Shown: positions 24,451 to 54,198, counted from the first letter of the stretch. The stretch is DNA of 64,000 bases from Klebsormidium nitens (GCA_000708835.1 DF237052.1:1-64000); one strand, 5' to 3'. The notes: generated from the sequence alone by a model not told the origin. Made by a program: numbers and translations.

Positions 24451-25634
24451 GTGGGCTCTAAGAAGTCGGCAATTGGTGTAAAGGAGTGGGTTTCTAAAGG
24501 GTTTCCGTTAAGCGGAGATTTTGTGGGCGTGTCGCCACCGCAGACGCAGGTTGAGGCGCTCCGTAGCGAGCGCAGTGTGGAGGCTCTGTTCGGCCGATGT
24601 CTTGATGTCGTGCGAGAATTTCGTTGGAAAGATCCAATTGACGTAAGTTTTGGCGCAGACATCTGCCTTGGTTTTCCACCACTCTCATAAGCACATGATG
24701 TTATGATGGTCATGAATCGTTCTCTGACCGTGGAGTCAGGTCAGATTCCTTCTAAGCATCGGCTGCGAGCTTCTGCCGTGATGCATGAGAACGAATTTTG
24801 CTTTGGTGTGATAAAGCTTGCACGACATGTTTTCTTGTTGCGTGGCTTTACCTTTTTGATTCCAGTACGCGTGACAGTCTCTCGTCCTGATGTAAGTGAT
24901 GTGGAGTTGCTCCACTGCGTGCTGGTTCGACAGTTTTGGCCGCTCTACAGGTTTCTCCTTTGAAGAACATGGCTGTGCTGTCTGGATCGGCAGTCCGGGA
25001 GACCAGCATTTCGCTGTTCTTCTTGAGGTTCATTCTATGCCGTTTCCTTATGTAGTGGTTCCGTTGAAAGCTTCCAAGAAGCCGGGATGGCAACGTAACC
25101 GCATTCCCTTCCCCTTGCTCACGTGGAAACCAGTTCCTCTCGCCCTCGAGTTGAAAACCAGTTGCTCTTGCGAGTTCCAGTCGAGCGAGTCGGTAAAGAG
25201 TGTAGAGTTACAACAAGTAATTTCGAAATTTTCTGCTTTTCAGTTCCTTGTGGGGTCTGCCGTCTAGCTCGCCTTTCTCATTGGCTCCTTGCATGTTGAG
25301 TCCAATTTGTAGAGTCCGATGGCAATGAGGATGCTTATGTGGCCTTCAGGGTCATGGCTTGTACCCCATTGTCTGGTAACCGACGCCCGTACCTGCCTTT
25401 TTAAGTGGCTGGTCGACAATCCACGAGGAACGCATGCCAATCCCCTTTCATTTTGTCCATTCTGCGCTGATGCAAGGCGCAGTGTTTTGGCTTTATACGA
25501 CTTCGTTGAAAGTCCTCACGTTCTCACGGTCTTAGTCGAATCCGACACCCGCGCTTTGGCCGGCGGCGGTTCGTGCTGCTGACGACAGCCAGGTGGGCGT
25601 GGGCTTGCCTTGGTGCTCAAAGATTGTCAAAGTT

Positions 25635-25703
25635 GGCAGTGATGACTAGTGACTGGCCTGCCGCTGCACTGGCCAATGTACATCGAGTAAGACGACCGAT
25701 GCC
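25635..25703 (+). ncRNA. C/D-box-like unit
   Basis: GGCA-GTGATGA (perfect RUGAUGA)...CTGGCC...TGGCCA...CCGA-TGCC. Confidence 0.5.
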
Positions 25704-28009
25704 GATTTGGGACTTTCGATTCAAGACTTGGCTAGGTATTTTGGTTCGAGCCTGTCGGCGACAAAAGATGCTTGCTGAGACCGGAGCGGCAATGGTCAAT
25801 CTGGTCTGTCATTCTTCAATGGATCTCGTAAGCTTCAAATTGGCTAGGTTGTTTGGCAGGGCTTCAGAGAATCAAAGGCCGCTATTTCCTCTTTTCACCT
25901 CAGCTCTTGCGCGACCTTGGGTGATTGCTTTGTCAGCTCATAAAGAGAATGCTTCGAGCATATTCATGTTACTAATTGAGCTCTTTATGACCGCATTTCA
26001 CGAAATACGGCCCTATAAGAGGTCTGGTTTGCGTGGCCGCTAATCGAGTTCCGGGCACTCATTTCGGCCTTCTTGCTTTTGAACGACCTGTTAGTGTCAG
26101 CCTGTCAAAACAAGCAGGCACTTTCTCCAGCGTCCAAAGTACAGTTTGTTGTGCGCTTTACAGACAATGAAAATTGGTGCCCGGCCCTCCTGGGGTCAAC
26201 ACATCTTTGCGAAGGCTTGATGTCGTTACACCTTTTTTCCCTCGTTACCTGGTTCACTCTCGAGTGATGGTGAATGTAGTTTCTTGCTCTCTCACGTTCC
26301 CCCTGGCTACATGCGGCTAGGCCCCTGGTCGGTATGTCTTGCGATGCTTGATGACTGAATTTGAGACGGTTCCCGTTGCCAAGTTTAGCAGCAGTCGCGT
26401 CTGCTTTAGTTAGGTATGTACCGGTAGGCCGGTTTTGACTGCTGTCGTAAGAGATTGCTAGAACCGTCCATGACGGCGAATGCGAGGAGAATCGGCGGCC
26501 TGGTCGCGACCAGATCTGAAATCAATTGCAGATGTCAGCATTATACTCCCATTTCAGATTCGTGGCTCTCCAATTGAGCAGTTTACTTATCTCATTGGCA
26601 CCCTGGTCAAAAAACACACATTAAGGCTATGACAGAGTAATATCTGACGTAATTGTCATTGTCGGACACCTGCGCAGAAGCCGGAGTGTGACTGGAATCA
26701 CGTGCTTCCTCCTCTTCACGGGAGGAGACCACAGTTAGTTTTAGATCTTCGGGCTTGTTTGCTTGCATGGACTTCTTGTATCGATTTCCCTCTCCCGATT
26801 GAAAGTGCCACTTGACTCCTAACATCAGCTGATTGCCAGGCACGGCATCACATTGCAGGGTCCTGCAAATATTTTCCAAACTTACTCAATGAGGGAAGCG
26901 GACAGCACAACGAATCAAAGAGCGGAAGCTTGACGCAGTCGAAATTTTCAGAGGACACTGCGAAGCAATCGGCGTCACTTAAGCTCGTCCTGAGACCTAC
27001 TTGTGGGCTCTTTGAAGACCTCCCGACCATGTGACAAACTTAACTTACCGGGTCAGGAAGTTGATTATTTCATAATGGTTCGGATGCGGAGCTGAGACGG
27101 TTTAGCGAGTGATTGTAGTACGTCCGTGTTGCATCGTCATACCTCTATGCATGTACCTTCATCGAGTTTCGCCCGTGAGGTGCAACCAACTTCAATTGTT
27201 ACGGTCAGCTGGCTTAGTAACGTTCCCATGTCAAATGGAGTGACCGTACCGTCTTTGACGAATGTTGACGGTTGAGGACGTTTGCTTGTTGCGTATGTGT
27301 TTGTCGACCTATTTTCCGAGACAACAGGCGTGTATAAATTTTGTCGGACGGAGCTTGATGTGGGTGATACAGATGCTGTGTGTATAAGGGTCTGCAATCC
27401 GTTCCATGGAACAGCTAGATGTAATTGATCCAATCCCAGCTCTGAGCAGGCACTGCGATGTTGCCACGTAGATTGTAACGTCGGGTATCGCTGTGTTAGC
27501 TGAATTCAGAACAAACTTGAAAGTTCCTTGAAAAGCATATTAAGAACCCGGGAAGTTTTTCTCGAGCAGTTAGGAGGTAAGAGCTTTGCTGGCAATGACG
27601 ACTATAGGCGATCCGAACGGCGGACCCGGTGGCATTGTACCTGGAGCCAGTCACTGGCGCGATAGCGTCGGATCCTGTTTTCTTTTATTCTTCGGTCAAA
27701 TTGTTGATTGCAACGAAATAATCGCCAGAAGTGTCTGCACACTGAAGCTCTGGAGCTTTGATAGTGTCTGCTTCAAATTTTACACGGCGATGACGAGAAA
27801 AGTTGGCCCTCACGGTGGACATCAGTCAAACCGGACGCTGAAGATGCCGCAGCTGTCCATTCCTTGTTTCTTGGATGGTCCTTCCTTCCACGGACCTGAG
27901 TTTGCAGCTTTACGAACAAGGTCTACGGTGGATTCTTAGGCGTGTAATGCTTGAGACTTGTTCTAGAAGCCTGTCAGCATGCATGTGGTTTAGGCATAAT
28001 CACTAGTCC

Positions 28010-30140
28010 TTGTGCATAAGGGACGAGACTCCCGGTTGTGTGTTCTGTTTTTGCAAGGGTAATGATAGCCGATGCATGGCCTTGAACGGGTGGCCAATGG
28101 AGCCAGTTGTGTTTTTCAAAATGATGCCAGCCCCCTTTATTTCGTCACTTTTCAAAGTGATTGGGCGTTTAAGCGTCGTCGCGTCCGGTCACCAAGCTAA
28201 TCTGGTAGCAGGGAACCGAGCTGCCTCCGCTGCTAAACTTGCATGGTTTCAATAGCGTCGGGGCGGCAGCATTTACAACGCTTCGAGATCTCAGCTTTCG
28301 GCTTGGTTTGCATATCATTTCCTCCGTCGTTTGCAGCCATGCCCGTTACTAATTTTCTACTTGGCAGTGTGGACGCAGCTTTGGCCGTCATGGTCAGCCC
28401 TAAGCATTGCATGCTTACCGATGCCGTGTCTCGATCTCCTTTCTTCTGTTTACTTCGATCCGTTTGGACATCTTCGTTGTCTTCGTTGCTACCTTGTATC
28501 GTCGGAACGGACTTGTCCGCAAGAAAGTGTACCGGCCTGGTTGCGACCTTATTTGACAATCTTATGGAGGTCTGCCTCCTGCTTATGTCAGCATGCGCTC
28601 CTTTAAAGCACGATGTTTGTTGCTGAAGCTGCTGAGTCTACGAGTCAGCCTTCCGGTGCTAAGCTCGGCCTTGATTAGAGAAGACTGGCCCACTTTTGAT
28701 AACCACAGTCACGTCCTTCGGAGGTGATGTTTGAGCCGACACACGGCGGCGCTTTCTGTTTCAAGGCAAGAGCAGGTTTGTAAGCAATTGGAGGCTTCAC
28801 GCACGTTCTTAATAAGAGCTTTCAATCAGAACCATTTTTCGCTCGTTGGCTGCTTTTAGGTTGACAAGATTCTTGGTGCATCCCGCACTTACATCACGCC
28901 TCGTGCGAGCCGCTCCCATACGCTGATTTTCTGTCTCAAAGATGCCCAAGAGTATTGACCCTGCACCCTCACAATCAGACATAGTTTCATAGTTTGCCAT
29001 GTGATATTTGAGCTTTTGTTGCACTTTCCAACTGCTGGACTTTCTCTTCGTTGACGATGATCGAAGCACGCCGCCTGGCCCTCATGGTCACAGAAATGTT
29101 GAACCGATGTCAAGTGATTCTGATCAACGCTTCTGTGTTCCGTCTGCGAGTCCCGTTCATCTGACCGACGTCGCAGTAATCTGTCTCACCTTCATCACGT
29201 CCTAAGCCTCTTCCCAAAAGGTCCAGCGCTGCCGCGTCGGTCGCCGCTGCGACTTGGCCATGCTGCCCGGGGATTTCGGGAGTCGCCCGGTTTGCCGCAA
29301 CGTTGCGACGTCGCCTTCAAAGCTTGTTCTCAACCTTCCGATGTACCCTGTCGCTCTCGTTTACAGCAACTAGAGGTTCCAGTTAACGGCACCCGTTCCA
29401 AGTTTCTGATCTTCACACCAATGGCGCCTGCTGATGACAGAGGCCCGCTGAAGTTCGCACTCGGCCCAGGAGCGGCTCTTCCAACAACGAGAAGGAGGGT
29501 CTGGTTCATTACCCAGTCTTGCACGCAATTTACCTTCCTCGAAGGCTATGATAAGGAACGCCTGACCCTCATAGCGGCCGGCCACGTTTACCTAGTGCAG
29601 TTGATGCCACGCGCGAGCCAAAACTAATGAAATCCTGCCCGTGTGAGATAGCGTATCTTCATAACCCGCTGCTGCAGAATTGACAACCCCGGCGCTCAAA
29701 GCTTTGTGTGCTTCATCGCAGACTCAATGGTTCTTATAGCAGTGCACTACTTGGTGCTCGGAAGCAGCACCGCGAGATCGGTGGCCAGATCTTACGGCCT
29801 ACCTTTGGCCCGTAGTGACGATGATGTTTGTATGGCTGTAGCCGCCACCAGTATGGCACCACACTCATTTTGGTTCTGGTGCCACCCTTCGATCTTCTTC
29901 CAATCCTGGTCCTGACGTATTTACATGTTCAAACCTATCACTCACCGAGTACGTCTGGAAGGCGGTGAAAGCTTTCTCCCTTGTTTTGCGCTTAAGTGAG
30001 AACTGGTATGCATGTCATCAGATCAGATCTGTTCGCCTTTCGGCAGACACGTTCCTGTGGGTCCTTGATTGACGCTCTCGAGATTTTCCTTGGTATCGTC
30101 GGGTGCGCCTTCTTGCTTGCTCCCCACGTGTGAGCTCGAA
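28010..30140 (+). repeat. Diverged segmental duplication, copy 1
   Basis: Matches 31870-33990 at ~3.86-3.87 kb offset. Anchors: ggac(g/a)agactcccggttg (28021/31878); ttgcagccatgcccgtt (28331/32196); gacaaccccggcgctcaaagcttt (29681/33556); ggtgaaagcttt (~29963/33820); c(a/c)c(g/c)tgtgagc (~30126/33984). Confidence 0.8.
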
Positions 30141-31869
30141 CGTCCTTTGGTGCGACCATAAGCTGCGCTACGAGTTTCTCGAGCGACATCGACGTTGCGA
30201 AGCGGCAAGTCTTTTCCTATCACCTTGAAATCCGGACTATTTTCCTAACCTAGTCGTGGGATTACGCTCGCTCTGCGTTCACGTAATATTCGTCACATTG
30301 GTTGTTTGGCTTCCTCTATCATTGCAAGACACTGAACTCTTTTGAAGGCCTGGTCTTTTCACCAACTGTTTGAGTTTGACTCCCCGAGCGCAACTTTTCT
30401 AGCGTCACTTTGAATGGGCTGTCGACATTCGAAATAGTTCGAAGTGGATAAGATGTCCTCTTGCGAGGCATCACCCAGGAACGGATAACGCCAGATACAT
30501 TGATACGCGAGCCCATCTTCGCAGAACCTGTATAATAAACCACAAGTGCATAAAGAGTGTGTCAGGTCGCTTCGAAGTGCAGCGACATATTCAGTGCCAA
30601 ATCCCCTTTGCAGTCGCCGCGACCACTTTTGCTGACGCATTTTGCAGCAACAGTAAGCCCGAGAATTGAACTGTGATGTCGCAGTTTAACGTCGGGCGTT
30701 ACGGGCCACAGAGCTGACAGAGCGCCCACTTGAGCGTTTGCAGCGTGTTCATTTTCATACTTAAAGCAGCGGCGAGCCAGAAGCGAGCTTTTCCGCTGTT
30801 TAAGCCCGCATGATTCTTTTCCGCTGTGTTATCGAACACGTACTCTCGTCTCTTCCGAGTCGTTGCCGAGAATTGAGGGAAGCACCTCAAGGCCCTCACT
30901 TTTCTCCACTGTACGGTTGAGCGGCTGTCGAAAGTTGCGACTCATATGGTCGTCTTCTTCAGGAAGTCGACAGGCGCTTCAAGTTGGCCCCCATGGCCAC
31001 AGCGGCGATGTTGCTGACGCCAGCGTGACATCCAGCCTTACATCATCTACCTTTGAGGATTTCAGAAACTACCAGACGAGCTTCTAGTTCTGCCGGTTGA
31101 AGGATCGCCCAGGTACTGGAGTCACTGGTCGACTTTCAATCAGCAAGCCATGTCCAGTGGACGCTTTGTCGCATTGGTCCTGTTGTCCTTCAGCAGACTC
31201 CTTATCGTTGCATCTTTCGAGTCCGAGTCTTATGACGATTGGGACATCAAGGAGGCAACGAGGAATAGTGATGGCGGCCTGACCAAGTTGGGGCCAAGGG
31301 GTTCAGGTTCTTCCGACCGCCTCTGTTTTTTACCTGGTGCAGCGCCTGGTTGAGAATCGAAAGTCGTTGATATTAATCCTTCCTTCCTCTGTACAAGTTA
31401 AAGCCCCTCGGCGGCGAGAGCAAAACTGCCACTCGGCTCCTTACAGTAGCTTCAGAGTAAAATCCTCTGATCCGCTCTGCGTACGCAGAGTCTAGTAGAC
31501 GAGAAGCAGGAGGGAGCGGCCTCACGCCATCTGGAGCCCGAAAGTGAGGAGATTGGGGATTTCTGCTTATTTCCTCAACTGCCACGACTTGCGAGGAGCA
31601 TTTGCAAAACCGGATCTGTTGAAAGTTTTTGTTTCGTTTTCCACAGTGGCAATGACGATGAAGATCGTTGGCCCCCTCAATGGCCACTGGTGATCTCATT
31701 GCCTCGTGACGTATTGATGCCGCGACTGTCTATCATCCGGACCTTCTTTCCCATGGACAAGCATAGCAGCTTCACGAAGAATGCCCACGATGGGATCTTC
31801 ATCGTTCAAGGATTGAAATTTGTCTTCAACGCCAGTCAGCTTCTATTAAGGTAGTCACTAGCTGTTTTG

Positions 31870-33990
31870 CATTGAGGACAAGACTCCCGGTTGCTAGGAA
31901 GTTGCAAGCCAATGGTTCTCCATGCATGGCCTTGGCCGGTGGCCATTGGCGAAGATGGTATTGTGATACGATCCCATTATATTGATTCTCGTTTTTTAAT
32001 AGGAAGGTTTTGAGTAGCGATACGGAGAGCGAAAACCAGTATGCGGTCTTTCCTTGGCGGATGACAAACAACCCTACCTCTCTCGCCTACTTTCATTTAC
32101 TGCTTCGAGGGCTCAACCAACGGTATCAGCGTGGACACAGCAGCATTCAGAACGCTGTGTTCAGATTTTGCTCTTTTCGAATCGGTTCTCCGTCACTTGC
32201 AGCCATGCCCGTTTGTCAAGTCCTTCTGGCAATGTGGACGCAATTTTCGCCCGTCGTGGTCAGTACTACCACAGCATTATGATACCGATGCCATGTCTCG
32301 GTCTCCTTTTGTCCGGCGCAGTATGCTGAACAAATTCGACGCCTCCGGCGCTGTCTTGTACTGCTTTCCTTCGTCCTGGCCTCGTTGCGACCTTGCTTTC
32401 CGGATTGGCTATGGAGGGCTGCGCTCTGCTTATATCAGCATGCGCACAATTTCCCACCCCAAAGCCAGTGACCACGGGTCGACTCTAGTCGCTGTTTCTG
32501 CTCAACGGATCGGCCCATGCTTGGTGCTTTACTTTCGGTTGGCAATGAGTGAGACAAACGGGGCTTCTTTCGGTCGCCAACAATCTCTTCTGGAGGCAGC
32601 TTCAGATGCCAACACACGCCGAAGTCCTCAAAGTGCCCACAAGTATCGACTGTACATTTTGATTTCTCTGCTAGCTTTATTGACGATGACTGAAAAAGAC
32701 GGGTGGCCCTCGTGGTCACTGAATTTCCAAAAGATGTCGTTCTTTCTGCAACCCCTTCAATCTGATTGACGTCACAGTGAACTCGCCTGATGCGCTACGA
32801 CTCTTCCCTCCGGCCCCAAATGGCCTTTGCACTCGTCTGAACGCAACCTTAAAACTTTCATTCAATCGTCTCAGTTTCAGTTGTGGAGCTTAGGACGAAG
32901 CGCGCACGTGCTGACCTCAGAAGTTCTCTGCCTGACGATACTTGGACTTGGCCAAGACCGGCCGTCGGCAGCAACGAGACCGAGGTTCCAATGGGGACAC
33001 GTGTCCAGCCTCGGACCCAAGTATTCTTGTTGACGCCACCTGTTGCTCAATGGCGGTAAGGTTGGGCGATGAAACCTGCGTGGTGATTTCAAGGCAGTGG
33101 CTCAAGCGGATACGCATGGTGTCAGAACGGAAGGAAAGAGAACAAGGAATCCCGGCGGACTCTGTAGGACCCCTTCATATATAATCCCTTCGACCGACGG
33201 TGGATTTAGTGAATCTCGGTTTACCTAGAACATCGATCCTAGGGGGGTATGGCTAGGAGAGCTCTCTTACGTCCACGTTCTCCCTCCTTCCGTTCTGTCA
33301 GTCTTCAAAAAGAATTTGCGAAATAGGTTCGGGTTATGCCATCATCAGCGGTCTGATTTTGGTGCATACCATGTCTGGACCATGTCCGAATCCGGGTCCA
33401 AGATCCTCTTGATTTTCACCGATGGTTCTGATGACGAACGTCTGGCCCTCATGACGGCCACGACCTCCAAGGTGTCGCTGATGCCACGGCACGTTGGATC
33501 TGATTGAATCCTTCCCGGTGTAGAAAGCAGTCTTTAAAATATTTTGCTGCAGAATCGACAACCCCGGCGCTCAAAGCTTTGCTTCATCGTAGACTCACCG
33601 TTCCTTACAGCGGTGCACGAATCGATACGTCGGAGGTTGCACGACATTTGTGGCCAACTCTTAGGATTTAGTGGCAATGGCATTGATCGTCGTATGGCTT
33701 TGCCGGCCACAAGGTCTCAGATATCTGATTCTAATGCCACCCTTTCTTTTGCTTCTCGTCCTCGTCTTCGCTTAGTAATTAAGCAACTGAATCCTTTTAC
33801 TAGATTCGCTTCTACAGGTGGTGAAAGCTTTTTCCCCTTCTCTGCACCTACGGCAGCGAGGATTGGCCAATCCAGGTCTACTCGTCTGGTCGGCATATGC
33901 GTTCTCGTTTGGTCTTAAGCTGACAATCTCCGGGTTAGCATTACTGACAGTCTTCCATGCAGCGCCTTCATTTTTGCTACCCACCTGTGA
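31870..33990 (+). repeat. Diverged segmental duplication, copy 2
   Basis: See copy 1; same order and orientation of anchors. Confidence 0.8.
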
Positions 33991-35169
33991 GCAACGCAAT
34001 TCCTTGCAAGCTTAGACTGTACTGCCGACGAGTGCTTTGAGCCGCAAGCATCGCGAAGCGCTAACTCGCTTGCTAGGACCTTAAGAGAGAGCCCATTTCC
34101 GTTGCCATGCCCGGATTGCCGTTAGTTTGTGCAGGCGGTGCGCATTTACTAGCTTGTCATCTTGTTTGACTAGTTGCATTAGCATCCCATACTGATACAG
34201 TTGTGAATACCAGTCGATCAACCGAAATCTATTGATACACGAACCCAGTTTGAAAAATCTTGTTTAGTGAATCGTGACGGCAATGAAGACAGTTGTCTGG
34301 GGCCCCTCTGGGCCAACGTGGTACTCCTTATCCATTTTTCCCGCTGCCATACTAGCTTCGCTTTGAGTCCACAGCTTGTTTACTCCTCCATCTAATTCTT
34401 TGCTGCAGCCAGAACATTCACTCTCTTATTTCCCTCGCTGTGGCGGCTAAAACACTTCGATTCGAGAGCGTTGAAGTCGTGGGTCCGACTTTTAGGCGTC
34501 TAACGGAGCTCGTCACTGGTCATTGAGCAGCAGCGCCTCTAACAAACGCAAATCAAAGTGCCCTCCAAACTGCTGAATGGCAAGGAAGTAGAATGCCCGG
34601 CCCATGCGGGGATTGATGCGGCGAACTAATATGCTGACGCCATCCGCTTTGACGCTGCAGTTGAGCGATGACTAAAATACGTTTTCCGTGCCTTCTCGCC
34701 TCCTGCAGTCTTCACCGCAACAATCAGTCTGATGCCGCCGCTTTTGGTGCATATACGCTAAGCTCTTTCTAGCTCCACGGTGTAGTGCTCGTACGAAAAC
34801 CTTCTGAGGTCTGACGTATGCATTCCAAGATTGATTACAGCCACCGTGTCGACCTCAGCAGGGTCGCTGCGTCAAGCTCGGTACTGATTAGAACGGCCAT
34901 TGCCAGTGATGACGAGACTGGTCCTGGAAGTCCTCGATGGAGGTAAGGGCATATCGGCTTCAAAAAAGCAACCCGGATAACAGCAGGCCCTTTCGGCGAA
35001 AAGTTGCGGGGGTCTCTTCTCGGTTCCACCGACGCGCACACGTCTCTCCCTTATGTCACGGCTCTTGAGAATTATCTGAGGCTCTCGTCCTCTTAGCCAG
35101 ACCGTAGCGCTTCTCGAGCAGCTTCGCAGCGTACCGACAAAGAATCAAGATTACGGACCTGATCCTAAG

Positions 35170-35230
35170 TGGCAATGATGACAGCCGCCTGGCCATAATG
35201 GCCACGCTTAATTGTGCCGTTCTGATGCCA
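35170..35230 (+). ncRNA. Best-preserved C/D-box-like unit
   Basis: tGGCA-ATGATGA(box C)-cagccgcc-TGGCCataatGGCCA-cgcttaattgtgccgttt-CTGA(box D)-TGCCa: perfect boxes, 5-bp terminal stem, internal hairpin. Confidence 0.6.
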
Positions 35231-35945
35231 GCTTGACGTCCTTCTTGCAATATCCTGCTTAGAAAACCGAAATTTCAAAAGCTTAATGTACAGCTTGAAC
35301 TTATACTTGTGTTGCAATTTTGAAGATCTGCTAACTTGACTGGGCGCCCAAAGATTCCAATCAGAAGGTACAGAAATTCGATACTTTACGGCAAGTACTT
35401 TCATAGTCATTTTAAGTAGACCCACTAGCCGAAGAGCTTGTGGTCGGTACAACGATTGAGACAGTGGCAATGAGCAGTTATGATGCCTGACCCAAATTGG
35501 GGCCACTCGTTGAGCTGTTCTAGCTCTCCAGAGTGCCTCCATTGCTTTTCTGATTTAGTGCCTGGTGAGCGAGTCCGAAAAGTCCTTGGAATCAAATTTC
35601 ATCCTCGCAATTCGCGCCTGTAGGCGGCAAAGAGGAAGACTGCTACTCGGCGCCTTGCAGTATTAATTCGACTCTTCACTCATGATCGGCTCTCCGTATG
35701 CGGAGTCTTATTACTACCGCGGCCCTTGCTGCTAACGTCACGGCTTTCGATCAACGATGGTCCTTGGATTCTGCCCACCGCCAGTACTGAGCGCGGTAAC
35801 GACGTGAAACTTCGTCACGATGCTTTAACCGTGCCGGATTGAGGGATCAAGGGCGCGAGGATGTTCGCTTCTGACGACTGGCCATTCTGACCCACTTATC
35901 TCATTTCTTGATGGGCTGTTGCTCTTTTCCTGATTTGGCATTCGC

Positions 35946-36132
35946 TTTGCAGAAGAACATCTGTTTGGCGAACAAAAAGGGGCGCGAACACTAGCGGCTG
36001 AATAGGAAGAGGAGCGGCACGCTATGTATTGCGGTGCTTTGGCGCCAACTTGAAAGCACCGCGTTCCTGCAGCAGCAAAATGGGGCGTTCAAGCGGGGGT
36101 AGCTGGGTGCCGCGAAACCGAAGCGGATATAA
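35946..36132 (+). pseudogene. Decayed copy of the NOP14 terminal exon including its acceptor
   Basis: tttgcag|...ggcgcga...agaggagcggcacg...cagcagca...ggggcgttcaag...gaagcgga aligns to 24288-24450; contains stop codons and an insertion. Confidence 0.75.
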
Positions 36133-39100
36133 TGGACCAAAGCTAAGTGATTGGAAAGTATCTGATCGGTTTGTAGAAAAGGTGGAGCAACAGCCCAAAC
36201 CTGATGCGCGTGGGAAAAATTGGACAACGTCGGTATTTGTGGGCAGGACCTTGAAGCTGTCCCTTCAAAATTTGCCAAAACTAAGCGAACAAATGTTGGA
36301 CAGTATCTTTCTGTTCCTAGTGAGGCCCAGGGATGGTGCACTTCTCGCAGCTTTTCCGCCGCTTTGAATGAGCATGGGACGTCAAGTGGGTTACTGTGTG
36401 GTGCGTATCATGACTTGACCGTAGACTGTCAGGAAAGGCCTTCTGAGAAGCATCACGAGGCGCCCACTCGAGATTTCGTGACGGGTGCTTTTGTGAAGAA
36501 ATCCTCTTCTTTTGCTGCGCTTATCCGTTTTACAGTTTGGCCTGTGAATGCCACTCGAGCATTAGCGCGAGCGTTTCGTCCGCAATGACTCCAAGGAATC
36601 GTGGCGCTGATGGCAATCACTTTGGGGTTGATGCAGCCGAGAATGGAAGAGGGTGCCCGCTTGCTTGACCTCTGTATCCTGCTTTATTGGCGAAGTTTGG
36701 AAGTCAGTTGAGTCTGATCTAAAAAGGGATACCTTCGAAGGTGCGCTTTTGAATTTGACGAGGGATTGGGCGGACACTTGAAAGCCCACAGAAAAGCCCA
36801 CATGAAATCCAAGTTGTACATCCGAAGCCAGTCTGCCCGTCTTGCTTTACCATGATATTCCATAGCGTGTGCGGGCCGCGCGGAGTCCAGTCAAACTTGT
36901 TTCTTGTATGTGCAACTGCTGTTTGGCCATGACGAAAAATTGGGACAAGGACTCCCAATCGCCATTTCGCTTTCGAGGCTTCGCCCGACGTACGCCACCT
37001 TGTTCCCGCGCTTGACTTGCACGATCGAGAAAACTTACAGTCAAAACAACACTGTGCAATAGTCGCTTGAGCGTCCGGATGAGTCCGTCACTTTTGCGTG
37101 AGCTCGACCTGATGAAGGCACCCCAGGCCCTGCCAATGGTCTTGCTAAAATGCTAGCCCAGTCAGCAGCGCTGAGTCTTTTGTATTGTATTGTCTCCCGG
37201 ATTTCGCGCCTCTTGTTCGCTTTCCTCCTCGCGCTGCCCTTCCAAAGCTGCTTTTTTGCGCTAGCGAGGATCTCCACCGCTTATTTAGTTGTTTTGTTGC
37301 AACTCAAAGGTCGGAAGGATATCACGGCATTGCGATATTTATTACACATTGCCCTCCATAGCCTATTGTGTGAGCCGTAGCCTTTCGTGCGAGTCACAGC
37401 GTTTCGTGTGAGTCGTCGCCTTTCAAATGAGTCACAGACTTTCGTGGGTCATGCTTCATGCTCCATCGGTGCATATGGCAGTGACGAGAAATTCCCGCTC
37501 TTGGTAGCCTGTTGAGCAGCATTTTGTTCTGCCTTCGGCATGCCATTTTTCCCGCTTTGGTATTCAAAATTGACCTGAAGATCCAACTGAATCGAGATTT
37601 TTTTGAGCATCTAGGCTCTACTCGATTGCCCTGCGCCGTCTTATATTTCCTTATGAGTAGTAACGCAGGCGCAACCGCATTCTTCTCGATGCGCGCTCTT
37701 TCCTTTTAAGGATTGAGAATAATTAGGCAATGAGGACGTATGCTTCACAATTGTGATCAGCAGATCTTGTACTTCCAATGCCGCACCCGCCGTTCGTTGA
37801 CCGGCAAGTAAGATGCATGAATTCTGGCCAGTCGTCTTACTTTCTGGATTACCTTCTACTCTTCTGGGTTTGGAGGACGTTGCAGGCGATAACGACAACC
37901 GCCTGGCTCCGACGCCACTCAAAGATCACGCTGCTATCAATCATGAATCGGACGCAACGTGTTTACTTTCTCATCCTACGAACTGCTTAGCTAATCACGA
38001 TGACTTTTCATTACGGTGTGCTCCTAGCTAGAGCGCGAGCAGAGCGTCAGGCCCTTGTTCGGGTCTGATTGGCGACTACTTACTTGAGAATTTAGGGGAT
38101 AGTCCTCTTGCTGACGTCACCATCGCTTGCATCCATAGTCGGCTATCGTTGCGTCGTTAACCATAGAACGGTGGCGACACGATCGATCGGCGCCTGTTCA
38201 AAGTTGTCTCTTGCGGTAATGACGGAGTACTCTAGTCCCGGATTCCGTCTGGGAAGCGATTGTTTGCTCGATGCCATGTGCTAGGATAATGAAGTCCATT
38301 TTTGATGCTCAACTTTCCCGACGCTGTCTCTTATCCCTGTCCGAAAGAGTTGGTACCTTTGTTGTGCTCCGGGACCTTATCTCGATCCTTTCTGGGCAAC
38401 CCTGGGACTTTTCACTCGCCGGGTTACTTTACCTTATGGCTATGACAACTTTCTATTTGGTCGGATGACCATTGAAGATTACTGTCAGATTTGGACGCCA
38501 AGAGTGCTTCCGACAAATACTTAAGTAGAACCCACCAGTGAAGAGGGATGTTTGACGATATTGTAACGTAACCTTGTTCAGGTTTCTTTTTTCAGTCTCG
38601 GATGCGAGGAATCTGTGCCCCGTACTTTGCATCGGTGGTATGGATAAGTACCACCACCGCAATGATGCGAAAGCCCGGTCTTGGATGCTACTATGCACGG
38701 AATGTAGCATCTTCAGTCCTTTGATTGAGTTCTTAACGACGTTCTGACGCCAGGCCTAGTTCAGCGATCCTGGTGGGCAAGAACCGTGCACTGGCCTGGT
38801 TGCGACATTGCTCAAAGTGGTGAACAGGCCACAGTCTGCTGACGTCGTTACCTTAAGGTTTGCGAGCTGCAGCACTTGGTATGTGACGCCTTCAAGCGCG
38901 TCTCTAAGGTCATTAATATTGCAAGGCAATTGGCAATGATCAACGAGAGACTGGCCTCGTGTAAACCACGGGTTGGTCAAGCTCGTACGTGTGTACCTAT
39001 GATGCCCGGAACAAACAACCCAACTAAAATGAAAAGCTCGTTGATTCGAAGCATCGAGTCAGTTCAAAAGGGCAAAGTCGTGATCAGACTGGCAATCCTT

Positions 39101-40920
39101 CATGTGCCACTGGCACTTTGTGGTGGACCTTGGGTTTGGCGCGTCGCTCTGAAACCTCCTACATGTTGCGTCTTCGTATTTGAACTTGCCGTTTTAAGAA
39201 GGGGCCACCCGTATCAAGATTCTGAGGAGTTGTGGGTTTTGGACAACAGTTTTCGCCTTCACTCATCCGGGCTGCTAAGTTTCGTAGGACCCGGCCATAC
39301 TTGATTCAGGGTGTCTTAATGGTAATGTTGCCGCTCCGGCAAAACTCAAAAGATTTGCGAACGTCAAATCTCGTCCGAAAATTTTAGCGCACCCGCCGGC
39401 GTGAGTTGGAACAAGAGTACGAGTTTGCCGGTTGTCATCCGCAGAGCAGCCCGTGACAGGCTTGTTTTCTGCGACTGATGCCATGACACAAGCGTGATGA
39501 CACAAACGTACTGCTACTCCTTGTAAAACACATTCGGATTCACTTATACGCGTTCACTGGCAATGATTATTATACGTTTGCTAACGCAGTTGCCACTTGT
39601 AACCGAGGACATACGAAGCCAGCACGTTGACATGCGTACTTTAATTGGGAGCCTCTGCGCTCGCCTTGTACTTCGATAGAAGCCTGCAGTTGCAAATCTT
39701 TCAAAAAGCTTCTAAAGAGGCGTACGGCCTAGTAGATCCAGATCTAGGCGTACGATCTCACGACGGCTCTGTCTCTTTTCCTTTTCAAGAATAGCTGCGC
39801 TCGCACGTTCTTCTCAATCAAGCTTTTGACCATCGTCCGAGTATCACAATGGCGATGAGGACGAATTGCCTGGCCCTTGTGGTCACTTCCAGTTCAACGG
39901 TGGTCTGATGTCATGATCATTACTTGCGTGAATGTGAACTGCTAAATAGAACCGTCTCTCAACCTAGGTAATTACGTCAGCCGCTATCTCCAGTCAAGTC
40001 GATTTGTCTTGGCCGTGTGGACAAAGCCTCTTATTTGGCCCTTGTGGTCATATAGCTCATTCTCTGCTCGCCGATGCCGCTTAGTATGAATAGTGACAAC
40101 GTCTTAATGCTGCTTTGTGTTGGCTAGCGGTCTTGCTGCTCACACCTAGTTGCTTTCCTGGGCTGGTTGCGATATTGGTCAGGGCGTTGCCGGAATTTAC
40201 CGGCTGCTGACGTCAGCGCCTGTACGTCTGCCAGCGGCGATTTAACTTGCTGCTGATGCCCCAAGGTCGGAGTCTGGCTAACATCGGGTAAAGTCATTCG
40301 GCAAGGATTAATGAAAGACTGGCCGTGTTTAGCTGACCGGCCAAGCAGTAACCGTAGCGTCAGATGCGCGCCGCGACAAGACTTTACGCCAACTTGAAGC
40401 TCGAGTCCTTTCTTGCAGATAGTGCAAATTTCTGATGAGGTTGGTGAACCTTTATGGTGACATGCTTTGACTTCAACGAGGGGTCCGGCAAACCGCTAGA
40501 CACGCTCATACCATTGTTAGGGTCCACGCCTCTTCAGAACCGAGATTGCACTTTCGGAAAGCGGGCACCAGTATCAAGGATTACGAATGAGGGTTCGAAA
40601 GCTTTAGACCGCGTTAATGCTTTACTCTTCGTTCTTCAGCCGCGCTGCCGAGCGCAGGAGAACGTCTTAAGTACGTCCTATCGTCTCCACCCTCTTGTTG
40701 TCATTCCTGCAAACTTCATTCTCGCCCACGGTCCACTCGCCTGCATGACCAGGATTGTTGACACAGCGCCGACGTTCTGGCACAAAGGTGAGAAGACATT
40801 TGTTCTCCGCAGGTCACTATATGACGGATTCTTTTGCTTCCTTCTTCCGCTTCTTTGCTGCTGATGTCAGCATTTGTTCCGCTACACTTTCCGGAGACGG
40901 CCGGATCCAAGTCGCCATTA

Positions 40921-40986
40921 CTGGCAATGATGACTTGTGCTGGCGCAGTTTCGCCATCAAACGCTTTCAATGTCGTGTGAAGCCAG
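40921..40986 (+). ncRNA. C/D-box-like unit with compensatory internal hairpin
   Basis: ctggca-ATGATGA...TGGCG cagttt CGCCA...GTGA-agccag; the hairpin is a C-G to G-C swap relative to TGGCC/GGCCA. Confidence 0.5.
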
Positions 40987-41137
40987 GTCGTAGGCATCTG
41001 TGTTTTGAAGAGCTCCTGATCGCGCTCGCTTTACGCTTAGGAGGCAGCGATCTATCGGTGTGATGTCGCTACAGCTCTTTTTGGCTTTTCTCGAGCAGCG
41101 AGACTCCGAGTTTCCACATGCATTTCCACGGCCAGGA

Positions 41138-41183
41138 CCGCTTCCGAGTCCGCTTCCGCTTCCGCTTCCGTTTCCGCTCCCGC
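41138..41183 (+). repeat. Imperfect (TCCGCT)n hexamer microsatellite
   Basis: ccgcttccgagtccgcttccgcttccgcttccgtttccgctcccgc. Confidence 0.8.
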
Positions 41184-43998
41184 ATCAAACTCTTCAAGCT
41201 TTCTAGATCGATCAAGAATGGTATGAAGACGATAATTTGGCCGTTTGGCCACTGTCAGATAGGTCGGACTGGAGCCGTTCCTGCGCCCTAGCTAAATCAG
41301 CTTCGCGCGTACAACTTCGTCGGGACTGTACCAGGCAGTTCGATCCTCCCTTTCGTTTTAAGTTGATCTGGTGCTTGCTTCAAGACGTTTGGGCGGCGTC
41401 ACTAAAATTCGACCAGCAGAAAATCTCCTTTCAACTGGTTCGTCGTGGGCACTATTCAGCCTGCAAAAGGGCTCAATAATGGCCAGGTGGACACTTATTT
41501 GGGCTTTGTGGCCAGGCTCGCCTTTAAGTTTGCTCCTAGCGGCACGTCGTCCGCCTCAGTCTCATGGCACGTGCCGCACAATTGACTAATTCGCTTCTTG
41601 TAGCTGATTACTCCCAGAAGATCTGGTGAATCGACGTGCTTCGCTTTTCGTCCTTTGACTGGTCTGGATTGAGGGCGATGAGGAAGGAGACCCGATCTTC
41701 CGATCATTCAATGTAAGCTTTTCCTGATCTTTCGGAGCCATGCACTTCCACTTTGCCTCCTTTTCATATTCATCTACATTCTTCAAAGAATGAGGAATGT
41801 TAAACCTGGAAACTAGTAGTACGTACTTGGAGTCTGCACTGTCCACCTTCCGGCGGCCTGTTTTTGCCTTGAGGCGGACGGGTAGTAAGCCAACTCTTGG
41901 TGGGCGGTGTGGACCAACTCACTCAGGGGTTCAGATTGCTTTCCCTTGAAACATCCAAAGGCCATGCGGAAAGCTGCCTGGCCCTCGCAGCCAACAATCT
42001 ATATAAAGCACGTGTACGTGTCAAACAACCAATGCCAACCATATGACTGAGTCTGGGTCGCGCCGTGGCCAGACCGTCGATGTTAGTAACATAAGATGGT
42101 TATCACCGCTCAAAACAATCAATCAGGCGTTGCAAGCTTGTAGATCGTGTCTTCTATAGGTCCGTTTGTCGGTCCGCGTTTTCCGCCCAGAGATGCCGCT
42201 CACAGTATACGTAGCGGCTAAGCAATCAAACCACTTCTTTAACCGGTCTCCTGGTCACGGTAAGTTCCCGTCTCGAGGCTTAAAGTCGGCCATTTTAAGG
42301 AAGGCGCCAGACCAACTTGAATTGAGCGTTGGGATTTGGGCGGTCCGTTTTGTAACCTTATTACATCTGGTAAACAACCACGTCAAGTTTTTCGACAGAG
42401 CCGCGCTACGTAAACGAAGCTTGGCAGGCGTCAGGTCGGATAAAGTTCCATGTTCTTCAGATTTTAAGGGTGATGTTAACGTCTCTTCCGGAGCCACGTG
42501 TCAATCATGCAGCTCGTATCGATACTATTTATCCTGGGCATTGATGGCTGATGCTTGGTCCTCGTGGCCAGAGCGGTTTTCGACCTTTTAGTACGGATGT
42601 CTGCTCAAACCTGGAAAAAAGGCTTGTTCTGGATTTCCTGAGACACCGTAGTAGAGCTGTGACCAGCGTCTTTTTGACGTCGCTGCCCTGAATGCAAGCT
42701 CAGAGGGCACCGACGTATCAGTCTGCTTGGGTAGTAAAGCCGTGCCAATACAGCGCACGAGATTGCTCACGCTGACCTCCGGAGTCGTTGGACATTCCAG
42801 CGACGGCTGAAGGGAGTCGAGCATGATCTGCTGGGCTGATTACCAGATTACTTACTGGAGAGCGGCGATGACGAGCACCATAGTCCTGGCCTGCATGGTC
42901 GTGAGGCCATGTCTGATCCTGGTTCGGTACATCCGAGAAGGCCTTAACCACTCCTGTGAGGCTCGACCTGAGTTTGAAGCGTTTGAACTTTGCGTATCGG
43001 TTTATGCGTATCGCGTTTTTCGGGGCGGCGTTTGTGTTTGAATGTTCGTTGAAGTGCGGCAATGGTGACAAAAGCCTGGCTAGTACTAATGCAAAAGCGC
43101 CACGTCTATGAAGTATTACTATCATCGATACCGAGCCCAACTTAGGCAATAACTTCAGCTTTCCGCAGTGCCACTGGGCAGACTTCGCCGATAAGATGGG
43201 ACCCTTCACTTGGCTGAACTTTTACGCCATCTTTTAGAGACTTTCGAAAGACTTCGTAACTCTTTGCCACATTTCTGAGCTGCCCACTTTAATAAACATT
43301 GGGTGATGGGCGATGAAGATCTAGACGTGGCCCTTAAGTTCAGGCCACGTACTGTACCAGAAGACACTCCGCGGATGCAAGGTCTGCTTTTCCCTCTCGA
43401 TTCTAATTCACATCTGCATGCTCTGATTCCATCCGGGTTGCAGGCCGGCCGGGAGGCTAGCTGCTGTCTTGGCTCTGCTCCCAACCGCTTGAGCGTCGCG
43501 CCGAGTAAGATGGTGCCCCTGCAGCCCGCAATGTGGGTCTCTGATGTTCTTTAGCGCACTAGAAGTCGATGCTGATCAATGGGCCCCATCAGGAGATGGT
43601 GCGTCAACAGACCCGTTTTCTCTTTTGAGTAACCAGAGAGCGGCGATGACGACGATGGTCTGGCCTCATTGGCGTGCGGCCATTGGTGTAGGTTCTTCAT
43701 CAGATTGCCGCTTCTCGACGATTCGGAACGGGTTTGATGATCAGATTCCACACAAAACGATTTTTTGCGAGAAACCTGAAGGGGGCATCAATAAGCTTCT
43801 CGTAGAAGCTTGATCGCGTAAGTCGTGTGCGCGAGAAAAAACGGGCGTGAGTGCGCTTGACGTATTACATCAGAGCAACATTTCGAGAATGACTGCTGTT
43901 GGTTAACGCCGGTTTCACTCACGTCACCGCGGGCCGATCTTGTTTAAATATTGTCCTGGTGCTCAAAGGTGGCCCAGGTTAACCTTGACTTAGAAGAG

Positions 43999-44057
43999 CG
44001 GCAATGATGGTGGATAGACCACTGGCTCAAGATACGATCGATCTAGTACTGATGCCG
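43999..44057 (+). ncRNA. C/D-box-like unit
   Basis: cGGCA-ATGATGG...tagta-CTGA-TGCCg; terminal stem cggca/tgccg. Confidence 0.55.
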
Positions 44058-46879
44058 GGCGCAACGCTGTATTAGTACTGTTTTGTTGTCGGCAACTTCC
44101 AGGACGCCGCAAGCGGCCGCGCGCTTCTGCCGCTTCTGTGTCCCTGCTTCTGATCATCACGAACCGTGCCTCTCAGAATCCTGCTCAGATTCTGCCGCTC
44201 GAGTGCGCTGCTCGGCGAGGGCGAGTGTTCAAACCCTCCTTGTGACGTCAGCAACTCGGTGGTTTTGCGAGGAAACTTAGCGGCCTTCTGGGCATGCCGG
44301 TAGCAGTTTTTCTGGGAAGAAGTGGATCGCAAGACGCATCATATGCAGCTTCCAAGCAAGCACTTTGGAAGTTTAAGCGCCGCAGAGCCACGCGGCATTA
44401 AACGAAACTTTCGTGGCCGTCGCTTCCCCGTCAGTGAAGACAGCTGGCGGCCTGACCCTACTTCGTAGACTGTGGTCACAACTCCCATTTCTCAAGTCTA
44501 CTTATGCCGTACGCCTCATTTCTTCCTGCACGTATGTGTTTGGCGGCGCTGCGGGCCGCGGCGCCGCCAGCTTCTGCCGCTTGATTATCTCCCATTTCAG
44601 CGTCCCGGAAAGCTGTGTGGCAACGCCTCCGATCAAGATAGGTGCCACAGAACCTTCTTCCAAGCAGCTCGCTAAGTGATCTCTGATCACGGGCTCTTTG
44701 AATTCCGGGCCGGGTCCATATTTGCGGAGGATTCGACTAAGTTTGCTCACCGGGAATTCGTCCAACTTGTACATAACGCTGGGCCGGGGGCGGCTGCCTT
44801 ATTTGCATAACGGACTAGAGATATAAGTGAGGAGACGCTGAGACGCACTACGACGTTTTGAACCAGCAATCCGTATACTTCGTAGTAGCTTGGCAGCACG
44901 ATAAGCACGAGATCGTCGTGATCTCTTTGACTCGGAGTCTTGAACGCACGTCCCTTTTTCCCGGCTATCACCGGCCCGGAGTTTCGGGGACGCAACTCCG
45001 CAAATGTCGAGCGGTGACGTCATAATGCAGAAAGTCAAAAAAGATGCTACTAGCCGGGCAGTTTTTACGATATGGAACTCCCACCAAGTCCGTCGAGAAG
45101 CTGAGTTGCAGTAAGACACTGCAGTCAAGCTGCTTGCGTCGTTTAACCACTTCAGCCGCCGCTTGAAACTGCAATGTACGTCTGGTCTTAGTGCCGTCAG
45201 CGGTACCAAAAAATCTGATAGGACCTTTGGCTGCACCGAGCGCGTAACCTTGATTGTGGCCCTGATCAAAAAGGTAGTATTGGCTTGACGGTTCCTTTGC
45301 CAGCACGTCTGTCCTTTTCGCAATTGTTGATGAAGCCAATCGATATCAGCCCGCGCCGGAGCTGTGAATGTCTTGTCATACTAGAATCGGGCCTATCGAC
45401 GTTACCAATTCTCAATCTCAGCCTACGACGCCGTCATGCAAACGCACCTTCAGTTCAAAGCTGCAATTATCGAAGCCTGGCCCGGGGTTGCTGGTCCTAT
45501 GAACTTCCTTTTCTTTCCTCTTGAAACTCCCGCCGGTCTGTCGCAAATATATGACGACGTACATCCGTGAAGGGGCGCAGAGTTTCTGGTCCGCATTTTG
45601 GCAATGATGACTATCTGCGTGGTGGGGCGACGGCCCCGGACGTGAGGAACTCTTTCGACTCTTTCAAATGCCACAACCCAAGACTGCCAGTACGACTCAA
45701 TTAAGGCCGGAGGGCTGAACTCTGCCGCTGTGAAGCCCGGATTTTAGAACGATGTTTCCATCTTTCCACCACTCTTCGACCATCAGCCGTACTGCCTTTT
45801 CCGACCGCTGAAAAGTGCTTCGCGGCTTTGATGTACGGCATAAGATTGATTCCCGAACGGTCGGTCTCGCCGACGGCTGATGTATGATGCCGACGTCAGC
45901 CGTGGTGTTTTAGCTCACAGGCCGTAGTGCGCATAGTGCGCAGGATTCGACGTGAAGCTTGGCAGCGGCAATGATGTTGGGCGACTAGGGCATCGATTGC
46001 TGGTCAACGTGGTTAGAGAGAGAGTTTCCCTCAGATGCCGCAATATGTCCTTTTTTGTTCGATCAATTTGAATCAGTACCACTCAGGTAGCGTTGTTGAA
46101 GAACGTTGCGACCCGCCCCTAACTCGGAGGCCGCAGAAGCCGTCACTCCCAGATTGGAAAGTCGATTCATTAGGGGGCTCTTACTGAGTCTTCAGGACCC
46201 ATCCCGGCGATCTGATTGGTCGCGTGACGTAAGCTTAACGCCGTCATCGAGGTTTCAGACTCCACATGTACATTGCAGCTGGGTTAGTGTTAAGGACCGA
46301 GGCAGACCGTGATGTGGTGTCAAGGCTCCGCGCCGAGCCGCAGTCTGAATTGGTTGGCACTTCCTCCGGGTTTTCGGTGGCGATAACGCGATACTCGCAG
46401 GCAGCATTGTGAGTGGTCGCACCGATTCTAATGTTCGTGTCAATATCCCAGCACAGCAGCGTGTTATTGAAAATGAAAAATGACACTATGAGCAGCGTTC
46501 GGTGCACAAATGCAGGCCTGGAGGCCAGTTTGCCGAGCTCGCAGCCGATATTGCAACTAGTGTCAAGCAGTCAAGTTGAGCGTGCAAGTTGAGGTCGTTT
46601 GCACCAGGTTCAACAGTTTGGTGACCGATTGGAAATGTCAGTAGATGCGGGAATGTGCTTGGCCTGCTTTGTTGACACTACAAAGCATCCGGGGGCCCAA
46701 GAGCCCCCGGCACGCCTAGTTTGCAGGATATTGAAGGCAGTTTGACCCTACATATTCGTATCGACGGTCCGCGCTTGAACCTCAGCCAAAACGGTGGAGT
46801 TCGATGCGCCCGGCCCCCGGGCCTATGATTACGAAATCCGGCTAAACCATATACTAACTGTAGCAAACCGGATAGGTTT

Positions 46880-47076
46880 CGATTTCATGTTGACTAAGGG
46901 CATGTTGACATTTTATCGGGAAAGCACCCGGGGGACGGGTAGGGTTGGTATGGGCCCTGGGGGTTAGGGTGGGTATGGTGCGGAGCGGGTGTCACCTATC
47001 GGTTTAGGTTTTCAGGTTTGTTCGTACCCCCGAGCACTATCCTTATGTCAACATGCGCTTAGTCGACATGAAATCG
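46880..47076. repeat. 32-bp inverted repeat (30/32) enclosing a G-rich spacer; possible non-autonomous transposon remnant
   Basis: cgatttcatgttgactaagggcatgttgacat (46880-46911) versus atgtcaacatgcgcttagtcgacatgaaatcg (47045-47076). Confidence 0.8.
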
Positions 47077-54134: not shown

Positions 54135-54198
54135 GGCACTGAAGACGAGGCCTGGCACGTAGGCCACAAACTTACGGTGAACCAATTCTACTGATGCC
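54135..54198 (+). ncRNA. C/D-box-like unit
   Basis: GGCA-CTGAAGA...CTGGC acgta GGCCA...CTGA-TGCC. Confidence 0.45.

Follow-up and report, generated by a model that had tools for sequence, protein, structure and literature searches.

In the literature searched, large tandem arrays composed of orphan genes for box C/D small nucleolar RNAs (snoRNAs) are described from imprinted loci of mammals, and their function is still a matter of debate; the SNORD116 and SNORD115 arrays of the Prader-Willi locus and the SNORD113/114 genes evolve by birth and death (PMC4063771). Plants and green algae carry snoRNAs in polycistronic and intronic clusters, Ostreococcus, for example, having 49 snoRNAs in 12 clusters and 17 orphans in total (PMC7671301, PMC2875012). 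Analysis of a 64,000-nucleotide (nt) stretch of the genome of the streptophyte alga Klebsormidium nitens (GCA_000708835.1, DF237052.1:1-64000; hereafter the window) revealed dozens of short box C/D-like units on one strand, starting within the transcription unit of the ribosome-biogenesis gene NOP14. These units probably constitute a family of box C/D snoRNA-like genes, apparently orphan, that has been amplified in tandem and is processed from transcripts of NOP14. No literature on such arrays in Klebsormidium was found, and the host-gene linkage, the expression and the conservation across species are new.

The initial annotation of the window had proposed about 23 box C/D-like elements, marked by the exact 8-mer GGCAATGA, in a gene-free region ending at 46041. 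Counting on both strands of the whole window reproduced all 18 listed + strand positions of this 8-mer (25321-61894), its single - strand copy (31696-31703) and its absence from 1-25 kb; its rarity by chance was borne out by dinucleotide shuffles, which gave a mean of 2.43 matches for both strands together and a maximum of 7. The variant GGCGATGA occurs nine times on the + strand and never on the - strand of the window, and the 3' motif GATGCC, restricted to 24-64 kb, 34 times on + versus 9 on -. When GGC[AG][AG]TGA was paired with a GATGCC located 40-115 nt downstream, with at most one mismatch overall, 32 distinct units were obtained on the + strand and 2 on the - strand, so that the described succession of box C-like starts, including variants, and a downstream 3' motif is real. 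A covariance model built from 11 clean units and a hand-given structure consisting of a terminal stem and a hairpin (R1), and its successor rebuilt from the 32 matches of R1 itself (R2), both scanned with filters off, recovered 32 matches at E<=0.15 and 37 matches at E<0.1, respectively, exclusively on the + strand and within 25321-62361, the best - strand match having E=0.2-0.28. A generic scan for C/D boxes closed by any 4-bp stem was unspecific (10 candidates on + versus 6 on -). With degenerate copies included, there are about 50 units of 57-81 nt, spaced by a median of ~430 nt, 39 of them in 25.3-46.0 kb and 11 in 54.1-62.4 kb. The earlier observation is confirmed, and the array is larger than stated: ~30 model matches, or 39 units with degenerate copies, occupy 25.3-46.0 kb, and the array resumes past a GH17 glucanase gene. 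The interpretation given at the time is partly supported; it overlooked the host gene NOP14, the full extent and number of units, and a one-nt departure in the kink-turn (K-turn) register.

The units follow a consensus order, namely GGCAAUGAnGAcG, about 6 nt, cCUGGCC-loop-GGuCA, 15-30 variable nt and CnGAUGCC, with the consensus ends 5' G1 G2 C3 A4 A5 U6 G7 A8 n G10 A11 and 3' C n G A U G C C. Of the boxes that define C/D snoRNAs, box C (RUGAUGA) is recognisable close to the 5' end of the units and box D (CUGA) close to the 3' end; over 50 units, the box C bases were counted as A5 39, U6 48, G7 48, A8 40, G10 31 and A11 33, and those of box D as C 29, n, G 42 and A 43. Across the 50 units, conservation reaches 80-98% at positions 1-8 and at the last 6, and G10 of box C stands opposite C1 of box D as a G-C or G-U pair in 26 of them, like stem II of C/D RNAs. 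The central hairpin noted earlier is found in most units and covaries; it has 4-10 bp (consensus cUGGCC-loop-GGuCA) and begins 8-10 nt past box C. Homology among copies is recognisable over the 5' 40 nt, the segment between hairpin and box D being unalignable, and the mean column identity of the unit is 38%. In the best single unit (35171-35229), a constrained fold gave a GGCA stem, an AUGAUGA box C, the spacer CAGCCGCC, a UGGCCA-UAA-UGGCCA hairpin, 17 variable nt, a CUGA box D and a UGCC stem. Other copies are degenerate, among them 31911, which has lost box C, 37885, which is partial, and 34279, whose box D reads GC. Two further candidate classes, the SECIS element (selenocysteine insertion sequence; AUGA...GA quartet) and the hammerhead (CUGAUGA), were dropped, no long helix or GAAA core following the motifs, and short non-canonical introns or introners were rejected, the units having no GT-AG ends and being retained in RNA contigs.

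Double changes were observed in six of the eight modelled pairs, with 92.5% of alignment cells paired versus 18-45% when partners were slid, and none of 500 shuffles reached the observed covariation score, the alignment having been fitted to the model. The terminal GGC/GCC stem is paired in 94-96% of cells, G2-C being replaced by A-U in three units and by G-U in two to three, and GAC...GUC stem variants occur in three units. Because of these double changes and the failure of any shuffle to reach the score, both helices are considered to be kept by compensatory change. RNAalifold applied to a plain MAFFT alignment returned no structure, since the unit interiors misalign. The flanks of the units are unconserved, flanking direct repeats average 4.2 nt (4.21 in controls), and no A-tails, T-runs, target-site duplications or per-unit promoters were found at the units, which argues that they are neither mobile elements nor independently transcribed genes.

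The same family was encountered in a second alga. A 187-amino-acid NOP14 fragment located on a 68.7-kb JGI metagenome contig, with a near-identical 54.3-kb contig from a second sample (Ga0590115_0001888 and Ga0590114_0003329), led to a Klebsormidium-like relative, so assigned from the 78-89% DNA identity between its NOP14 exons and their counterparts in the window. There, exons 1-4 lie at 3022-8694 (contig L122; exon 4 at 8506-8694) and exon 5 at 19571-20061, and the 10.8-kb intron 4 between them contains 11 R2 matches at E<0.1 (13 by motif), all on the NOP14 strand; outside that intron, R2 found no unit in 36 kb of the relative. These units have the same ends, GGCAGUGAUGA...CUGAUGCC (e.g., L122 18260-18321), in the same register, and hairpins of different but complementary sequence (GUCGCC/GGCGAC, GGUGUGG/CACACC). 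With the relative's units added, the covariation signal persisted, with 18 double-change cells and a score reached by none of 500 shuffles. In K. nitens, the corresponding intron 4 (18850-19568) measures 719 nt and holds no units. Conservation thus extends to the family and to its place in the NOP14 transcription unit, but not to its position within the gene.

In the window, NOP14 was recognised by Pfam Nop14 (PF04147) matches in three open reading frames (ORFs; E 9e-26 to 4e-14), and its roughly ten exons (ATG at 14661, stop codon at 24449-24451) were mapped by tblastn of plant and algal NOP14 proteins followed by a splice-site model. An assembly gap (13801-14474) lies directly upstream of the start, and the promoter and 5' untranslated region (UTR) are unreadable there. 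Short, diverged duplicates of NOP14 exon edges occur inside its introns (15906-16205 and 21694-22059) and in the relative (L122 5757-6165, where the exon 3 start is repeated three times).

The first array unit begins 870 nt past the NOP14 stop codon, and a long RNA extends over this part of the array. Words sampled from 24460-34190 were recovered almost completely from three runs (fractions of 1.00, 1.00 and 0.98 in X1, X2 and X3, respectively), against 0.09 in a fourth run of the same study, 0.09-0.16 in another study (P2) and <=0.03 in all others. Contigs of the runs were compared with the window over 34200-40100: that of X1 (15338 nt, mean depth 92) is colinear over 34200-36290 and that of X2 (15394 nt, mean depth 88) over 34200-36343, both with no joints or differences, and that of X3 (6068 nt, depth 17) is colinear to 36461 with no joints. 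The X3 contig lies wholly inside the array, and its depth is therefore not borrowed from NOP14 exons. A DNA library is excluded, because depth falls sharply and total contig sizes are ~42 Mb. The stretch 24.46-36.3 kb is unspliced in RNA contigs of up to 15.3 kb, so that at least the first 17 units share one long unspliced RNA, in agreement with the polycistronic precursor suggested earlier. The X1 and X2 contigs both extend exactly 13247 nt upstream of 34200; if they are read as spliced mRNA, 9750 nt of this length belong to the array and the remaining 3497 nt precede the stop codon, a length that fits spliced NOP14, with a coding sequence of ~3.17 kb and a 5' UTR of 0.2-0.3 kb. The supposedly gene-free region has no recognisable protein-coding sequence (no ORF of >=150 amino acids in 25-46 kb matches Pfam), but its first 11.8 kb are part of the NOP14 transcription unit.

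The long contigs end shortly past a decayed copy of the end of the last NOP14 intron and the last exon, hereafter the echo exon, which lies 11.7 kb downstream of the live exon, is 62.6% identical to it over 286 nt by blastn (82% in a 71-nt core), keeps the acceptor TTTGCAG and carries indels and a premature TAG. The echo may be a former terminal exon with a poly(A) site, the array then having once been the last intron; the position of the RNA end is that expected from such an origin. No splice joints were seen within 34.2-40.1 kb in the contigs compared. Another study (run X4) contributed one exon-like contig bounded by AG and GT (34408-34659), which hints at spliced host forms with small exons; unit 34279-34348 ends 59 nt before the acceptor of this candidate exon and unit 34664 starts 5 nt past its donor. 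The proximity of the array to the stop codon, the long unspliced RNA reaching the echo exon, and the sense orientation of the relative's units in a NOP14 intron together identify NOP14 as the host gene.

How the array grows is shown by an old segmental tandem duplication with a period of ~3.86 kb, which carried several units together and is 60-63% identical over 0.7-0.9 kb in blastn. In a global alignment of the duplicates, identity amounts to 66% in the 5' halves of the units, 65% in box D plus stem, 36% in the variable parts and 44% in the spacer, and turnover of units by birth and death is evident. The segment in the position of a guide appears to drift freely, with the ends and the 5' half apparently held by selection. 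As for larger paralogy, in a comparison of 24.4-36.1 with 36.1-47.8 kb the echo exon alone aligned. The best-kept piece of the duplication is a ~60-nt block without C/D features (29670-29728 and 33545-33600; 97% over 37 nt), whose first copy is preceded by CAG and followed by GT like a small exon and for which RNAalifold gave no convincing structure. Within the array, a 38-nt tandem repeat of 2.1 copies was also noticed at 37368-37446.

In the mechanism that we consider probable, the units, lacking promoters and terminators of their own, would be transcribed within long RNA polymerase II (Pol II) transcripts of NOP14, in K. nitens as an 11.8-kb unspliced extension that follows the stop codon and reaches the poly(A) region of the decayed former last exon, and in the related alga as a 10.8-kb intron. 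The terminal GGC(A)/(U)GCC stem would join box C (AUGAnGA) and box D (CnGA) into a K-turn-like motif; a short hairpin takes the place of the C'/D' boxes, and a single free-varying segment of 15-30 nt lies immediately upstream of box D. Snu13, Nop58, Nop56 and fibrillarin could then assemble on the K-turn, and exonucleases could trim the RNA to the stems, leaving ribonucleoproteins (RNPs) of ~60-80 nt, as with plant polycistronic and intronic snoRNA clusters. The array would have expanded through unequal tandem duplication.

Several observations weigh against processing of such snoRNAs from NOP14 transcripts. RNP assembly, processing to small RNAs and any function are inferred. X1-X3 belong to one study, their assembled contigs carry no strand, and the run kind was guessed as RNA. 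Continuity of the long RNA with spliced NOP14 is suggested by the above arithmetic, the last 2.1 kb of the contigs having been inspected, and, read colinearly, the contig would begin at 20953, midway through NOP14 exon 6. Array part 2 yielded little RNA in the runs compared, since beyond the end zone of the long contigs there are only patchy contigs of 150-450 nt at depth 2-5 (36.4-40.1 kb). The K-turn proposed in the initial annotation is supported by box C/D ends closed by a covarying stem, but the register (5' GGC-A-AU-GA, 3' GA-U-GCC) departs by one nt from that of canonical C/D RNAs: either GGCA abuts AUGA, or an extra nt, U or, in a subfamily, A, separates the GA of box D from the GCC stem on the 3' strand, a 2-nt bulge resulting if A4 pairs with U; positions 4 and -4 do not covary. 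Internal C'/D' boxes are absent, CUGA standing at the hairpin site in ~6 of 50 units and then with no UGAUGA-like box. Degenerate C'/D' boxes are also seen in many eukaryotic C/D RNAs. Rfam 15 gave no match at gathering score in the whole window, and at E<=5 over 24-64 kb a single match, a chance microRNA, with no snoRNA, SECIS or hammerhead. The variable segments are unconserved between paralogs, and between K. nitens and the relative the best of them agree at 11 of 16 positions, the same as shuffles. Finally, in 15 eukaryotic rDNA loci with the expected 18S, 5.8S and 25S genes, drawn from metagenomes via the 18S 3' end (two units Rfam-checked), rRNA complementarity anchored 1-3 nt from box D gave run lengths like those of the antisense strand and of shuffled guides, these rDNAs being heterologous and the search having no positive control. 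Variable interiors and decayed copies are thus as the initial annotation described them, but as guide regions the interiors show no rRNA complementarity above shuffles and no conservation. Since this segment drifts freely, most units appear to be orphans with no recognisable rRNA target.

Given conserved ends and a conserved hairpin, alongside a putative guide that varies from copy to copy and is not kept between species, selection would seem to act on an RNP scaffold rather than on an antisense element. A possible, if rather doubtful, extension is that the array consists of guide-independent K-turn RNP modules, carried by NOP14 since before the split of the two algal lineages. Such modules might serve as a sensor or buffer through which production of a small-subunit (SSU) processome factor follows the availability of snoRNP core proteins, or they might give rise to long RNAs capped by snoRNPs; a fast-evolving guide library for non-rRNA targets is the alternative. 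In either case, if true, the array would represent an independently evolved equivalent, in the plant lineage, of the orphan snoRNA arrays of mammals.

Cis roles of snoRNAs in their host loci have been reviewed (PMC11028025), and the NOP14 pre-mRNA or long RNA could carry the units as protein-binding K-turn/hairpin modules that act in cis, and not as genes for trans-acting small RNAs. By recruiting Snu13/L7Ae-type proteins and those of the snoRNP core, the modules would either make NOP14 processing or output depend on the availability of these proteins, or cap and stabilise pieces of the RNA in the manner of sno-lncRNAs (snoRNA-ended long non-coding RNAs). Conservation limited to the protein-binding ends, the 5' half and the hairpin, a guide segment that drifts at the spacer rate or faster with no rRNA match, linkage to NOP14 in two species despite a different position within the gene, and accumulation of the long RNA unspliced at high contig depth all speak for such modules. 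However, the present evidence does not separate binding in cis from processing and release, and the NOP14 RNA seen does not extend to array parts 2 and 3, so that we regard such a cis-acting array as unlikely.

That the units are ordinary guides of rRNA or small nuclear RNA (snRNA) 2'-O-methylation, their targets having escaped notice in a comparison with heterologous rDNA instead of the rRNA and snRNAs of the alga itself, appears improbable. A C/D architecture and a ribosome-biogenesis host gene are classic features of such guides, and there is a slight excess of 8-9-mers complementary to conserved parts of the heterologous rRNA (8-mers shared by >=8 of the 15 rDNAs in 9 units versus a shuffle mean of 3.4). 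Yet no anchored duplex of >=11 bp exceeded the controls, and no guide is common to paralogs or to both species, unlike real methylation guides, nor did any snoRNA family of Rfam match. Plant 5.8S rRNA has a methylation site at Am47 (PMC8583080). The one conserved 10-mer pairs unit 43642 with GAUGAAGAAC of 5.8S rRNA. In what we take to be the plant 5.8S numbering, this best conserved match does not place Am47 at D+5. Comparison of the variable segments with the window itself revealed no complementarity. Among the metagenome rDNA units, L041 was found to have its 18S and 25S genes interrupted by three group I introns (1444-1754, 5850-6178 and 7756-8064).

Many degenerate copies and birth-and-death turnover would also be expected of functionless relics, a single ancestral snoRNA gene having been duplicated in tandem and its copies decaying neutrally in DNA that is transcribed but under no constraint. 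This explanation is still harder to sustain and seems very improbable, given that the spacers of old paralogs are saturated at ~44% identity versus the 80-98% at the unit ends, that both helices are kept by compensatory changes, and that the same ends and architecture recur in a second species whose introns are otherwise unalignable. Mobile elements (a miniature inverted-repeat transposable element, MITE; a short interspersed nuclear element, SINE; or retroposed snoRNA copies), which short units with conserved, partly complementary ends might recall, are already contradicted and excluded for practical purposes by an orientation of 37:0, the lack of target-site duplications, A-tails and Pol III terminators at the units, ends that are not inverted repeats past 3-4 nt, and a 3.86-kb duplication that moves several units together.

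Table 1. Coordinates of the array, its units, the NOP14 host gene and neighbouring features in the window.
Feature	Coordinates	Strand	Basis or remark
Array part 1, 17 model matches and ~5 degenerate copies	25321..35540	+	Between NOP14 stop codon and echo exon; R2 at E<0.1, motif pairing
Part 1, matches	25321-25387, 25635-25703, 26163-26224, 26625-26682, 27786-27848, 28363-28425, 29053-29111, 29544-29608, 31648-31721, 32228-32292, 32541-32610, 32682-32738, 33424-33485, 33673-33738, 34279-34348, 34579-34641, 35171-35229	+	
Part 1, weaker copies	26475-26536, 28058-28128, 31254-31321, 34664-34736, 35466-35540	+	
Array part 2, 13 model matches and ~8 degenerate copies	37477..46039	+	R2 scan, motif pairing
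Part 2, matches	37726-37782, 37885-37916 (partial), 38932-39006, 39851-39912, 40011-40078, 40923-40984, 41674-41739, 41960-42036, 42537-42601, 43642-43709, 44000-44056, 45600-45672, 45967-46039	+	
Part 2, weaker copies	37477-37544, 38215-38275, 39559-39620, 40183-40260, 41220-41276, 43058-43137, 43309-43379, 44430-44508	+	
Array part 3, 7 model matches	54135..62361	+	Downstream of GH17 gene; R2 scan, motif pairing
Part 3, matches	54135-54198, 54460-54530, 55502-55576, 57733-57789, 58410-58469, 60394-60474, 62296-62361	+	
Part 3, weaker copies	55885-55961, 57368-57436, 59505-59580, 61887-61961	+	
Best single unit, 59 nt	35171..35229	+	Top match of both models, 50.4 and 47.6 bits
Old segmental tandem duplication, period ~3.86 kb	27752-30226 vs 31612-34082	+	blastn, global alignment
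NOP14 gene (host)	14661..24451	+	Pfam Nop14, tblastn, splice-site model
NOP14 exons (approximate)	14661-14905, 16190-16444, 17571-18135, 18667-18849, 19569-20167, 20847-21039, 22002-22198, 22587-23123, 23613-23855, 24296-24451	+	
Echo exon (decayed copy of NOP14 last intron end and last exon; source 24191-24449)	35850..36131	+	blastn, alignment
Candidate exon of spliced host transcript	34408..34659	+	One 252-nt X4 contig (different study), preceded by ctgcag and followed by gttgag
End zone of long contigs of X1, X2 and X3	36290..36461	.	160-330 nt past echo exon; depth falls from 17-92 to 2-5
GH17 beta-1,3-glucanase gene, broken by assembly gap 49032-49798	47789-52178	+	Splits array into two blocks

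Elsewhere in the window, a 33-nt inverted repeat (94%; 46879-46911 and 47045-47077) lies between the array and the GH17 gene, and a leucine-rich-repeat gene on the + strand at 946-2763 contains ~19 tandem 72-bp (24-amino-acid) repeats.

Among previously described systems, plant and green-algal clusters have in common with the Klebsormidium locus promoterless snoRNAs released from one precursor, residence in introns of host genes that often act in ribosome biogenesis, and tandem-duplicate isoforms. They differ in holding few to about ten different snoRNAs per 1-2 kb, mostly with rRNA or snRNA targets, whereas here a single family of 37-50 apparently orphan units extends over 37 kb at a spacing of ~0.45 kb. 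With respect to the ends of the units, Snu13/15.5K/L7Ae binds both the 5' stem-loop of U4 snRNA and the canonical C/D K-turn. The Klebsormidium units have in common with U4 and SNORD115 a 5' strand of stem-AAU-GA and a 3' strand of GA-stem, the AAU bulge and tandem G.A signature being identical; unlike U4 and the canonical K-turn, they carry one additional U (A in a subfamily) after the GA of box D, before the GCC stem begins, and pairing of A4 with it would shorten the bulge from 3 to 2 nt. The K-turn of GGCAAUGA/GAUGCC is putative. Like the sno-lncRNAs and SPA lncRNAs of the Prader-Willi region, the long unspliced RNA described here is studded with C/D modules that could shield ends from exonucleases.

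The comparison with SNORD115/116 made in the initial annotation is apt, in that both loci have many same-strand copies in one long host transcript: tens of tandem C/D units in a long Pol II transcript, with apparently no rRNA complementarity and with birth-and-death evolution. Nevertheless, SNORD115/116 copies are near-identical over their full length, whereas here the variable segments are 36% identical and the ends and 5' half are conserved. In the mammalian arrays, a non-coding exon-intron unit is repeated and each intron harbours one copy; repeated exons are here hinted at by the candidate exon at 34408-34659, and in the relative at least 11 units occupy one intron. Unlike in SNORD115/116, moreover, the host is a protein-coding ribosome-biogenesis gene in a streptophyte alga. 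Independently built arrays of dozens of units in such an alga would provide a second, genetically simpler system than the mammalian loci for studying array function, and the association with NOP14, seen in two species, opens the way to concrete experiments.

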